The notes under the pieces are model-generated. The model worked only from the letters and a program-made list of their open reading frames with translations, was not told where the DNA came from and ran no database searches. From positions 35,588,001 to 35,652,000 of the forward strand of contig NC_043010.1 in NCBI RefSeq assembly GCF_006345805.1: a stretch of 64,000 bases of DNA. The letters run 5' to 3'. The translations under genes and the position numbers were made by a program. Shown in pieces: positions 1,510 through 63,942 of the stretch. The DNA comes from Octopus sinensis. Taxonomy: Eukaryota. The stretch's first letter is position 1; every line of letters begins with the position of its first letter.

Positions 1510-1628
1510 TTAACCAATAACATTTTTTGATGGAGGGAATAAGACTGTGTCAATGGTATGAATGACACCATTGTTGGCAGAGATGTCACGGTTGATGATT
1601 TGGGCCTTTTGAACTGTGATATGTAAAT
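1510..1628 (-). CDS. FAS-L exon 6 (terminal): (H)LHITVQKAQIINRDISANNGVIHTIDTVLFPPSKNVIG*
   Basis: Acceptor ctgcctccag|AT, FAS1 H2 motif, TAA at 1512..1510. Confidence 0.93.
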
Positions 1629-4600
1629 CTGGAGGCAGTAATTATTCATAGTGGTGGTGGTGGCAGTAATGATCATCAATGGGATAAGAAAGAAAGAAAG
1701 GGGAAAAAAAAAGGATTCAGTGAGTTAAGTGAGTGTGGCTGAGAATAATTCTTTTCTTTCATTTTTAGTGAATCAATCGACAACCCAGCCCACTGCCCCC
1801 CAAAATTTAGGATTTGGTAAAGTTGAAGAAGTGATTAAATGTGTATGTGCTGTGTATATGTATCTGTGAATTTGTGTATGTGTGTGTGTGTGTGTGTAAG
1901 AGACGAGAAAGATGTTTATGGAGAATAGGAATAGATGTGTGGGTCTGGGTGATCTTTGGTTTAAGACACATATAACTGCATAATTACTAATGAAACTAAA
2001 ACGATCCGGGATTTCCAGAGTGAGCAAAATGAATATGTAGATGTTGTTATTACAGATTTCTTCGTTAAATTGTCTAATTTATATTACACACACACACACA
2101 CACAATGAGCAAAAAAGGAAGTCCTAAAAGGAGCAAGTTTCAATAACTGTATTTATTTAATGCTTAAAGGGAAGGGAAAGAGTTTTGACATTTCGGACAC
2201 TAATCCTTCATCGCCCACCCAAAAAAGAATAGAAAAATATAAAGGAGGAAGGTGGCGGCAAACAAAGAAAAGAGTTAGCGGCTAGGTGGGAATGTGATTC
2301 TATGGGGAGGAGGCAAGGCTGTGTGCATGTATAGGAAGATATCTGTGTATAGAGACAGACATAGGGGAGGGGTGTGTGAGTGAAATGGATTGGGATAAGG
2401 GGGATGTGGGAGGATGGTGTGTTGGTATGATCATACTGTATGCAAGAGGAAGGCGTAGGGGAAGTGAAAGGTAAGAAAAAACACTGAAGAAAATATATAA
2501 GTGATAAATAAATGGAAGAGTGGACATGTATTAAAATGGTTGGGAAATAGGAAAGTTATAACACTATGTAAGAGGTACATGTCCGCTGAAAGTAAATCGA
2601 ATAAAATCTGGGACTCAACGTAGCCAATAAATAAGCTGGCATAGTTGGGTCCATCCGTGTTCTCATAGACACTCCAGTGAAATGCTCACATATCTCTCCC
2701 ATGAAGGAAAAGCGATGGAAGTTGACAACCAGTTCGGCTACATGGAGGAATGTAGAGGTATTGGGATAGAGCATAATGCAGAGGTTAAGAAAACATTGGA
2801 GGCCTTTGTTGTGAGGAATGACAGAGTAAAGAGAGGTGATATCCATGGCGAAAAATGAGGCAAGAGGGGCTGGTGGAGAAGGGGAAGGAATTGAAAGTGT
2901 AGAGGTCATGGGTGATGTCATGGATGTAGGAGTAAGGGCAACAACCAGAGGTGCAGAGACGGGTGGGGATGTGTTTGATAGGGGTAGTATCGACAGTGAG
3001 GCAGCTCCTGACAATGAAGCAGCCAAGGTTTTCAGGTTTGAAGATAGTAGGGAGGAAATAGAAGGTGGGGAGCGGGCGATAAGGAGAGGAATAGTGGGTG
3101 GGGAGGAGGGAGGAAAGAGAAGGAAACAAGAAAGTTATGGGGAAATCAGTTTCTAATTTGCAGTTACTTTCAAATACACTTTTAAAATAAGAAATGTTTC
3201 CTCTTTTGTACGTTAGCATAATAATTTGAAAAAATTACTCTTACGAATTAAAAAGGGAAATCTGTAATAATTATCTTTTTTACTCTAGGAACAAGGCCCG
3301 AAATTTTTTGGGAGGGGGCCGGTCGATTAGACCGACCTCAGTACGCAACTGGTACCTAATCTATTGACCCCCGAAATGATGAAAGGCAAAGTCGACCTCG
3401 GTGGAATTTGAACTCAAAACTTAATGACAGACGAAATACCTATTTCTTTACTACCCACAAGGGGCTAAACACAGAGGGGACAAACGGATTAAGTCGATTA
3501 CATCGACTCTAGTGCGTAACTGGTACTTAATTTATCGACCCCGAAAGGATGAAAGGCAAAGTCGACCTCGGCGGAATTTGAACTCAGAACGTAGCAGCAG
3601 ACGAAATACGGCTACGCATTTCGCTCGGCGTGCTAAGCTCGCTGGCTTGAAATCTATAATAATAATATTCAAAACATGTACATATTCGTTTCGCTTACAC
3701 GACACATTCAAGTCTATTTTTGTATTTTCCCGGATTGTTTTAGTTTCATTAGCAATCCAGCAGTGATATATACTGAAAGCCAAAGATCGCTTGGATCTGT
3801 AGTGTAAAGAAACAATATGGTATATACGTAGAGTTATATGCACATAAAGTTAGAGGCATAAACACTCAATCTACTCCCACCACTACTCTGTACACTCATT
3901 AACCAAGATCGTTCTATTAACAACAATTCTGCTGGAAAATAAAAAAAAACTTCCACATTATTTTTGTCCCCTTCATCTCCAACTCTATATTGCACGCTCT
4001 CAATAAATCTCTCCTTTCTTCTCATCAGTTACCGGTGCGAAAACTCGCCCGACCGCTTGACAGCATCCTTTCCACCATCTTCAAATTGTGCGCCCCTGAA
4101 CCTGCTTTCTAGCCTTCACACACACACACACACACACACTATATATATATATATATATATATATATATAATATATATATATATATATATATATATTACAC
4201 ATTCATATCTGTGTGTTTGCGAATGCCAAACTACTCCCTACTCTTGGCACTATTTGTTAGTGAACAGTACAAACTGTGTGTAAAAAGTATATAATGTATT
4301 ACTACGCTAATGTCGTCGTCCGTCTATCAAGTAATGAACATTATATATATATATATATATCCTTTCTACTGGCCTTTAGTATTGGCTCCGTAGAACTAGG
4401 TATACCCTAGGAGTTGCTCTTCAATGCCACTTACCATTGGTCTCTGGGTAAAAGTAATGTTGCTTTTGACATCAGCAAAACTTTTGTCATGAGAACTTAA
4501 CCATTTTGTCTATCAATAGACGATAGCTGTTTTGTCATTTTTAAAATCAGAAGCTTGTCGTCATATTGCACCGTTACAACGGGTGCAATTCTCCTCTGAT

Positions 4601-63800: not shown

Positions 63801-63942
63801 TAATGGAATATCTTGGAGTGCTGAGTATAGTGTTGTACAAGTTGTCTGAAGGAGGGAGCATTACATCGTTTATGACGTGAAAAATACCGTTAGTGGCTAT
63901 GTTGTTGGTGTTTACTAGTTCACACCCTTCAATAGTGACAAC
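57731..63942 (-). CDS. FAS-R: 3' part (exons 3-6) of a third two-FAS1-domain paralogue; exons 1-2 lie outside the window
   Basis: Exons of 187/99/114/116 nt with GT-AG introns and an open frame. About 119/171 aa are identical to FAS-M over exons 3-6 (hand count). Intron and 3' UTR sequences are also homologous to FAS-M. Confidence 0.92.
58426..58695. mobile_element. TA-flanked MITE with ~90-bp TIRs enclosing a tRNA-like cassette (partial second copy at 59221-59386)
   Basis: Core arms 58447-58515 and 58607-58675 differ at 2 of 69 positions. A 72-nt tRNA-like sequence lies at 58596..58525 on the minus strand. Confidence 0.85.
58760..59100 (+). mobile_element. Tc1/mariner-superfamily transposase 3' fragment
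   Basis: [16 protein letters not shown] and [20 protein letters not shown] motifs. Confidence 0.8.
59522..59677 (+). repeat. Degenerate telomere-like (TTAGGG)n tract
   Basis: About 25 degenerate hexamer-sized units, including tttagggttagggttaa. Confidence 0.85.
60017..60130 (-). CDS. FAS-R exon 5: (V)[37 protein letters not shown]
   Basis: Acceptor ctcccag|TT, donor G|gtaaga, 114 nt. Confidence 0.93.
60667..60729. repeat. 63-nt hairpin (26-bp stem, 11-nt loop) flanked by TA
   Basis: tacgacacgatctgtgcccttatatt / aatataaggacacagatcgtgtcgta, with one mismatch. Confidence 0.9.
61117..61215 (-). CDS. FAS-R exon 4: (S)[32 protein letters not shown]
   Basis: Acceptor cctttcag|GT, donor G|gtaaga, 99 nt. 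Confidence 0.93.
61925..62134. mobile_element. Foldback element with nested inverted repeats and piggyBac-like inner ends
   Basis: An outer perfect 18-bp IR, and an inner 31-bp IR (1 mismatch) reading TAA|CCCTT...AAGGG|TTAA. Confidence 0.8.
63050..63265. repeat. (TATC)n/(TGTC)n compound microsatellite
   Basis: Read directly from the sequence. Confidence 0.95.
63266..63560 (-). mobile_element. Helentron/HINE-like non-autonomous element
   Basis: On the minus strand it starts tctctatatataaaaggcagtttgtctgtctgtgtgtctgtc, a typical helitron-like 5' end. Confidence 0.6.
63756..63942 (-). CDS. FAS-R exon 3: [62 protein letters not shown]
   Basis: Acceptor ctttttgtag|GTT, donor A|gtaagt, 187 nt. 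Confidence 0.93.

Follow-up and report, generated by a model that had tools for sequence, protein, structure and literature searches.

How did three related genes with fasciclin (FAS1) domains come to lie side by side in a repeat-rich part of an octopus genome, and what might their products do? The stretch of DNA analyzed here (the window, 64,000 nucleotides (nt) in length) was placed by encoding-contig look-ups on chromosome CM016872.1 of Octopus sinensis (assembly GCA_006345805.1), at approximately 35,588,001-35,652,000 in plus orientation. It carries the genes FAS-R, FAS-M and FAS-L, which arose by tandem duplication. The best explanation overall, to which a probability of about 0.8 is assigned, is that this R-M-L array encodes small secreted proteins with two FAS1 domains, which would act as adhesion or linker modules of the skin surface and its mucus.

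The gene models were built using tblastn with FAS1-like open reading frame (ORF) fragments and complete proteins, stop-to-stop frames, in-frame extension and canonical AG/GT splice sites. By tblastn and stop-to-stop frames, a total of 16 FAS1-coding exons was identified in the window, all of them on the minus strand, and no further one was found there. They belong to three collinear six-exon genes without frame breaks, arranged head-to-tail in the order FAS-R, FAS-M, FAS-L. The intron phases are 1, 0, 1, 1 and 1 in all three genes and the exons 3, 4 and 5 have lengths of 187, 99 and 114 nt throughout, in exact agreement with an earlier note on this DNA, which had been made from the letters alone. 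These adjacent paralogues therefore show the single orientation and the common exon-intron structure of a tandem array.

All exon coordinates given below refer to the minus strand of the window. FAS-M spans positions 47830 to 32944 and encodes 297 amino acids. It consists of exon 1 (47671-47830, 160 nt, with the ATG at 47830 and the signal peptide), exon 2 (40457-40674, 218 nt), exon 3 (38703-38889, 187 nt), exon 4 (36994-37092, 99 nt), exon 5 (35416-35529, 114 nt) and the coding part of exon 6 (32944-33059, 116 nt), which ends with the stop codon at 32946-32944 and is followed by poly(A) hexamers at distances of 34 and 76 nt. FAS-L spans 16238 to 1510 and encodes 296 amino acids. Its exon 1 (16082-16238, 157 nt, ATG at 16238) carries the signal peptide and the start of the first FAS1 domain (FAS1-1) and has the donor GTGAAT in phase 1, exon 2 (12339-12553, 215 nt) the core of FAS1-1, and exon 3 (9950-10136, 187 nt) the end of FAS1-1 with the conserved EGC cysteine and the start of the second domain (FAS1-2). 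These are followed by exon 4 (7808-7906, 99 nt), exon 5 with the YH motif of FAS1-2 (5595-5708, 114 nt) and the coding part of exon 6 (1510-1628, 119 nt; stop codon at 1512-1510), with poly(A) hexamers 50-96 nt downstream. FAS-R is cut by the window edge, so that only exon 3 (63756-63942, 187 nt), exon 4 (61117-61215, 99 nt), exon 5 (60017-60130, 114 nt) and the coding part of exon 6 (57731-57846, 116 nt; stop codon at 57733-57731) are located inside, spanning 63942 to 57731. The boundaries that had been proposed for the array, 1510 and 63942, coincide exactly with the stop codon of FAS-L and the base at which exon 3 of FAS-R begins.

The FAS-R exons 1 (157 nt) and 2 (218 nt) were found in the adjoining sequence (locus L002) at window-equivalent positions 69108-69264 and 65658-65875, approximately 5.1 and 1.7 kb past the right edge. 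Joined to the exons in the window, they yield a translation equal to the full 296-amino-acid protein XP_029645539.1. The FAS-L protein is exactly identical to XP_029645341.2 and the FAS-M protein matches XP_036364764.1 along its entire length with 100% identity. Because of this exact identity to three RefSeq proteins, all named "TGFBI ig-h3-like", the gene models can be regarded as independently validated. For two of the genes, the hand-built models and the annotated coordinates agree to the base.

FAS-R and FAS-M are separated by a spacer of 9.9 kb, FAS-M and FAS-L by one of 16.7 kb. A fourth array member was not found in the intergenic DNA of the window by tblastn with L, M, R and a divergent two-FAS1 gene of Argonauta hians that is described below. 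Upstream of FAS-R, no gene was called and no FAS1-like exon was detected by tblastn in 10 kb before the ATG in O. sinensis or in 5.7 kb in O. vulgaris. Likewise, tblastn revealed no FAS1-like exon in the 10 kb downstream of FAS-L, where the next gene is an unrelated member of the Mtp family (PF03821) on the opposite strand. From the lack of FAS1 exons in the examined flanks, the array is concluded to consist of three genes. The expectation that it would probably continue past the right edge was correct for the first two exons of FAS-R, but not for any further FAS1 gene within the next 10 kb.

Pfam analysis of the proteins identified the Fasciclin domain (PF02469) alone, twice in each full-length protein (E = 3.5e-55 and 4.5e-60), with profile scores of 185.9, 201.7 and 100.7 bits compared to a gathering cut-off of 22. 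The conserved H1, YH and H2 regions of FAS1 are present, with little or no variation in the motifs TxFAPT, YH and NGVIH. As is typical of signal sequences, the N-terminus has a hydrophobic core and (-3,-1) cleavage sites near residues 15-18, and FAS1-1 starts approximately 5-20 residues past the signal peptide. An EMI/CROPT domain was not found by Pfam and there is only one mature cysteine. The motifs RGD, KGD, LDV and NGR are absent from every member according to a motif scan. None of the three proteins has a hydrophobic segment other than the signal peptide or a hydrophobic C-terminus; the last 15 residues are hydrophilic (mean Kyte-Doolittle value of -0.5 to +0.5), unlike a glycosylphosphatidylinositol (GPI) attachment signal. 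A GPI-anchored or transmembrane form was therefore rejected. These scans match the composition that had been read from the sequence, namely a signal peptide and two FAS1 domains without EMI domain, RGD, transmembrane segment or GPI tail. The mature chains have a mass of about 31 kDa, an isoelectric point of 5.6-6.3 and four N-glycosylation sequons, and the proteins are probably N-glycosylated and secreted.

The single mature cysteine is part of an 'EGC' motif in each octopus, cuttlefish and decapod protein. In the M-like protein of Argonauta it is retained alongside a further cysteine at position 220. In place of the motif, the gastropod relative, from Batillaria, has SGR, and the metagenome-derived animal protein P0244 has EGS.

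The AlphaFold2 model has a mean pLDDT of 90.6 and a pTM of 0.83, with residues 1-14 as the only low-confidence or disordered part. The best Foldseek matches were human TGFBI (7asg, 5nv6) and periostin (5yjg), with a template modelling (TM) score of 0.78 on the query and a root-mean-square deviation (rmsd) of 2.9 Å over approximately 276 columns, from which it follows that both domains superimpose at once on the TGFBI/periostin pair. For single domains, the matches to FAS1-4 of TGFBI reached TM scores of 0.91-0.92 on the target. Using phmmer, the octopus pair could be aligned in register with both FAS1-1+2 and FAS1-3+4 of periostin and TGFBI (E ~1e-49), which are the best sequence matches in the PDB. 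In a per-domain comparison with crude domain boundaries, the best scores of octopus domain 1 are those with Batillaria domain 1 and the amphioxus domains 1 and 3, and those of domain 2 are with even-numbered domains. The motifs NKDIL and EPDIM of TGFBI bind integrin alpha3beta1. The Asp-Ile of the octopus sequence 'SRDIP' aligns with both of them, and bacterial homologues, too, show at least 90% conservation of the aligned Asp.

Evidence that the genes are translated comes from published proteomes. In a shotgun analysis of O. vulgaris skin mucus by liquid chromatography-tandem mass spectrometry (false discovery rate < 1%), all three proteins are listed in Table S2 (PMC10138644). FAS-M (A0A7E6FAI7) is given there in two rows with 10 and 9 peptide-spectrum matches (PSMs) and coverages of 35% and 45%, FAS-R (A0A6P7T444) with 4 unique peptides, 6 PSMs and 22% coverage, and FAS-L (A0A6P7T6A1) with 3 unique peptides, 3 PSMs and 10% coverage. 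The three UniProt entries are linked to the RefSeq proteins matched above. In a second study, A0A6P7T6A1 and A0A7E6FAI7 are among four FAS1-domain mucus proteins (PMC11431876), and the level of FAS-M (A0A7E6FAI7, LOC118765953) in wild animals significantly exceeded that in aquarium-kept or senescent ones (PMC11431876 S3/S4). From their detection in the mucus proteome it follows that all three genes are translated and that the products reach the skin secretion, which together with the signal peptide bears out the earlier view of them as secreted proteins. In the literature searched on fasciclin or FAS1 in octopus and other cephalopods, on these accessions and on molluscan mucus, the family was found only in proteomic lists.

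The three genes are not equally related to each other. FAS-M and FAS-R share 70.9% amino acid identity overall and 69.6% over exons 3-6, whereas FAS-L and FAS-M share 39.8% overall and 41.9% in exon 3; values of about 70% and 42%, respectively, had been estimated before. At the DNA level, blastn revealed a collinear homology of 75-81% between FAS-M and FAS-R, which takes in 100-300 nt of intron sequence next to exons 3, 4 and 5 and runs approximately 170 nt past the stop codon, in line with the homologous introns and 3′ untranslated regions noticed at first sight. FAS-L shares with FAS-M and FAS-R only non-collinear copies of dispersed repeats according to blastn, and its DNA similarity to them is due solely to a SINE-like element (SINE, short interspersed nuclear element).

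The pairwise comparison of FAS-M and FAS-R resulted in a synonymous divergence (dS) of 0.31, a nonsynonymous divergence (dN) of 0.19 and a dN/dS ratio of 0.61. For FAS-L and its Argonauta orthologue, the ratio was approximately 0.14, with dS near saturation. A Tajima relative-rate test with the Argonauta M-like protein as outgroup counted 14 M-specific and 40 R-specific amino acid changes (p = 4e-4). FAS-R is thus an accelerated copy that is still expressed as protein. The dS between M and R varies by exon, with 0.12 in exon 1, 0.06 in exon 5 and 0.37-0.63 in the others. The low values in exons 1 and 5 (FAS-M 47671-47830 and 35416-35529) hint at patches of gene conversion between M and R.

The same three genes were found in the same arrangement in O. 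vulgaris (locus L001, OX597827.1) under the consecutive accessions CAI9732895 to CAI9732897. There, the automatic models of all three genes are truncated: the FAS-R model lacks exon 1, yet this exon is present in the DNA at L001:5700-5858, the FAS-M model lacks part of exon 3 and the FAS-L model lacks the signal peptide. The protein of O. bimaculoides carries a spurious N-terminal extension of 64 amino acids, which is read through low-complexity, repeat-like sequence. The defective public orthologue models are P0002, P0007, P0122 and P0003 of the present collection. In Argonauta hians (BAAFZT010000037.1), an M-like gene, an L-like gene and then the Mtp gene follow each other in the same order and orientation as in Octopus. 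Their exon lengths are 160/218/187/99/114/113 nt (M-like) and 166/215/187/99/120/122 nt (L-like). This locus holds a fourth two-FAS1 gene of 306 amino acids (L004:1768-6100, minus strand), located head-to-head with the M-like gene. It keeps the six-exon layout but shares only about 30% identity with L, M, R and the cuttlefish protein. Its orthologue was not detected by tblastn in the Octopus window and the examined flanks, and no retrieved protein is close to it. A cluster of the cuttlefish Acanthosepion pharaonis and two further Logan-derived sequences grouping with this cluster are 57-58% identical to FAS-M.

In a neighbour-joining tree with 300 bootstraps, the cephalopod sequences including L, M and R form one clade (99%), and the Batillaria protein and the amphioxus TGFBI-like halves are placed outside of it. 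Together with the tandem arrangement, this single clade supports the former reading that local duplication gave rise to a family of small secreted proteins with two FAS1 domains. Within it, the L sequences form a clade of their own (100%), whose sister group comprises all M/R-like sequences, those of decapods included (100%). Based on this topology, the duplication that separated L from M/R is at least as old as the split of octopods and decapods, unless the position of L is a long-branch artefact; no decapod L-type sequence was recovered. The split of M and R follows the divergence of Argonauta (92%), and the O. bimaculoides protein groups with FAS-R (100%). Judged from these sequences, the M/R duplication is specific to octopodids and predates the split of O. 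bimaculoides and O. sinensis. The tree therefore agrees with the proposal that M and R are the younger pair and L the older branch.

In both an exhaustive HMMER search with FAS-L and a profile search with the cephalopod alignment, the results were dominated by FAS1 proteins with multiple domains, for the most part from bacteria, whose scores add up over these domains. The only sequence added by these searches was the Argonauta orthologue of FAS-L. Outside the cluster of FAS-L, the exhaustive search gave no protein of two-domain size that outscored the M/R-like cluster, which is 38% identical to FAS-L. Tree and search argue, on a thin taxon sampling, against three ancient one-to-one orthologues in other molluscs, which the earlier note had named as the finding that would speak against a lineage-specific expansion. 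With its three genes the expansion is modest, and the two-FAS1 architecture also occurs outside the cephalopods.

By analogy with TGFBI, periostin and the cnidarian protein Sym32, the soluble FAS1 pairs would serve as extracellular adhesion or matrix-linker modules at the skin surface and in the mucus layer. They might bind cell-surface receptors or components of the matrix or mucins via the conserved H1, H2 and YH surfaces of FAS1, in the manner of a TGFBI/periostin 'half-molecule'. The candidate free cysteine of the EGC motif could offer a route to disulfide-linked dimers or to coupling with cysteine-rich mucus polymers, and duplication together with the fast evolution of FAS-R may diversify the binding partners. 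Several points weigh against this assignment. The adhesion and linker role itself is carried over from the three analogues. Proteins from inside cells and from haemolymph, among them actin, myosin and haemocyanin, are abundant in the mucus samples as well (PMC10138644), so that presence in mucus is no proof of production for mucus. Moreover, the Asp-Ile at the position of NKDIL and EPDIM may be structural instead of an integrin-binding site, and the dN/dS of about 0.6 between M and R could reflect relaxed constraint rather than diversification.

The second of these points is the core of the most serious rival, in which the proteins are ordinary components of connective tissue or basal lamina that organize collagen and mediate cell attachment via integrins in dermis, muscle or vessels like TGFBI and periostin, and reach the mucus samples only via sloughed cells and tissue fluid. 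TGFBI and periostin are indeed the best matches in sequence and structure, the mucus proteome is heavily mixed with collagens and cartilage matrix protein in addition to the myosin, actin and haemocyanin named above, and a protein named TGFBIp was found to be enriched in the spermathecal fluid of the octopod Amphioctopus, where its identity with the FAS family is unverified since the text gives no accession (PMC12691039). This reading is possible and yet doubtful, as the octopus proteins lack EMI/CROPT and two of the four FAS1 domains, the amount of FAS-M in mucus varies with husbandry condition, and the same proteomes contain separate, longer 'periostin-like' proteins (A0A6P7T3K5, A0A6P7SCM0) that are better candidates for the classical role. 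A decay of one or more copies, notably FAS-R, into pseudogenes, or an annotation artefact, might be suspected from the raised M-R ratio, the acceleration of FAS-R and the truncated O. vulgaris models. It is effectively excluded by the three intact reading frames with canonical splice sites and the detected peptides, four of them unique to FAS-R. Both O. vulgaris and O. bimaculoides have kept an orthologue of FAS-R, and the truncations in O. vulgaris are errors of the models, as the recovered exon 1 of FAS-R indicates.

An improbable alternative, drawn by analogy from Sym32 at the symbiosome, is that the proteins would mediate recognition, tolerance or defence where host and microbes meet on the skin, with microbes as the putative driver of FAS-R evolution. 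It would fit Sym32, a symbiosis-regulated protein with the same architecture (PMC3141003), the location in skin mucus as the first barrier, and the significant acceleration of FAS-R along with the raised paralogue ratio, but this ratio is a pairwise figure only and the suggestion of an 'antimicrobial peptide' (PMC11431876) is based on in-silico digestion alone. It is very unlikely that the proteins carry putative small hydrophobic ligands (carotenoids or other pigments, for instance) in the way of the algal AstaP FAS1 proteins: carotenoid-binding proteins of this type do occur among the sequence and fold matches in the PDB (E = 1e-6 to 1e-7), but TGFBI and periostin match far better (1e-49), and the AstaP-type matches cover a single domain with a TM score of approximately 0.40. 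The adhesion and linker role at skin surface and mucus remains the preferred reading. An unlikely, more far-reaching version of it describes an innovation of coleoid skin secretion, in which half-TGFBI proteins with a clade-specific free cysteine would couple covalently to mucin or collagen networks or dimerize and so tune the mechanics, adhesion or microbe handling of mucus, FAS-R would have a new partner, and the fourth paralogue of Argonauta would hint at a larger, older locus.

The DNA in which the genes are embedded is AT-rich (GC content of 31-47%) and contains approximately 50 tandem-repeat arrays, chiefly (AC)n, (TA)n and (ATAC)n, as well as fragments of SINEs, long interspersed nuclear elements (LINEs) and mariner elements. 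Perfect microsatellites account for 5.4% of the window. The description as genes hidden in repeat-rich DNA is therefore right about the repeats, but the genes are not hidden, since all three were already annotated in RefSeq and their proteins already detected by proteomics. The SINE-like dispersed repeat has a unit of 184 nt, which is present in 2.5 tandem copies at 23298-23759. Other copies were found at 3347-3609, 6624-6700, 9225-9300, 27537-27606, 37367-37434, 39403-39495 and 59186-59226, so that it is spread over the introns and spacers of all three FAS genes, and it is often read as a pseudo-ORF '...YRPRKDERQSRPRRNLNSE...'.

In the spacers, six decayed ORFs of transposable elements were found at approximately 22300-25630, 29841-30233, 31983-32306, 52983-53276 and 30884-31696 on the plus strand and at 51427-52065 on the minus strand. 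One of them contains a reverse-transcriptase fragment (RVT_1, 27.8 bits, slightly below the cut-off) and one a Mos1/mariner HTH_48 fragment, and the remaining ones are mariner- or LINE-like in appearance without a Pfam match. An ORF of 195 amino acids at 28132-28719 (minus strand), within long (ATAC)n arrays of the L-M spacer, encodes three zinc-finger motifs of the C2H2 type and is probably part of a transposable element and not a host gene. An array of about 56 copies of (CCACCA)n is located at 48285-48617, 450-790 nt upstream of the FAS-M start codon and inside the likely FAS-M promoter region; depending on the frame it reads His/Pro- or Gly-rich. Long microsatellites lie approximately 50-100 nt from splice sites of FAS-M (33112-33169, 35196-35313, 38599-38675 and 40724-41072), including a (GT)29 whose end lies 53 nt before the acceptor of exon 6 and a (CA/AT)n immediately upstream of exon 2. 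Despite these neighbours, splicing of FAS-M gives the annotated protein. Scans of the window with Rfam and for tRNAs resulted in no matches.

The label "TGFBI-like" of RefSeq masks a distinct, cephalopod-restricted clade of half-size FAS1 proteins in a conserved tandem locus. Here, its two duplications were dated, one accelerated copy was identified and all three genes were linked to mucus peptides. Skin mucus is of interest for octopus welfare biomarkers and bio-adhesion, and the family provides a small set of targets for the function of cephalopod skin secretion. The significance is modest, as no new protein type, mechanism or genome feature is involved.

Compared to human TGFBI (beta-ig-h3) and periostin, the octopus proteins are likewise secreted extracellular FAS1 proteins, with conserved YH motifs, an Asp-Ile at the NKDIL/EPDIM position and the same odd-plus-even geometry of the FAS1 pair. 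The identity is about 30%. They have two FAS1 domains instead of four and lack the N-terminal cysteine-rich EMI/CROPT domain, the C-terminal RGD of TGFBI and the variable tail of periostin. Owing to the missing EMI/CROPT, RGD and two FAS1 domains, they can be described as 'half-TGFBI' molecules, and the RefSeq name reflects similarity, not membership. Insect Fasciclin I, the founding FAS1 cell-adhesion protein, has four domains and is GPI-anchored. Only one octopus domain superimposes on its domain-pair structure 1o70 (TM score 0.44, rmsd 15 Å), hence the inter-domain geometry differs. The C-terminal GPI signal of anchored fasciclins, such as insect Fasciclin I and the plant fasciclin-like arabinogalactan proteins (FLAs), was not found in the octopus proteins.

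The cnidarian Sym32 of the sea anemones Anthopleura and Anemonia has a signal sequence and exactly two FasI domains, a mass of about 32 kDa, and was described as equivalent to the first half of a four-domain protein of the periostin/BGH3 type, in a family with lineage-specific duplications (PMC3141003). It differs from the octopus proteins by its phylum and by its location in the gastroderm and at the symbiosome membrane. For Sym32, a carboxylase recognition motif has been proposed. By architecture, the octopus proteins come closest to this small secreted two-FAS1 type (Sym32/HLC-32), sharing the signal peptide, exactly two FAS1 domains, a size of approximately 30-32 kDa and the lack of a membrane anchor; this is a grouping by architecture, not a demonstrated clade. 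The sea-urchin proteins HLC-32 and EBP are two-FAS1 proteins of about 32 kDa. HLC-32 and EBP-alpha/beta have been named as members of the FAS1 family (PMC7561615). By description, the hyaline-layer protein HLC-32 and the exogastrula-inducing-peptide-binding EBP-alpha/beta resemble the octopus proteins as small extracellular FAS1 proteins of an external matrix layer, but they belong to the embryonic matrix of echinoderms. A signal peptide, two FAS1 domains and a similar size were also found for BaRGS_006322 of the gastropod Batillaria attramentaria (294 amino acids) and for P0244 (282 amino acids), which in contrast are 29-36% identical, lie outside the cephalopod clade and lack the EGC cysteine. 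The octopus genes therefore represent a new, cephalopod-restricted branch of a known kind of two-FAS1 protein rather than a new kind.

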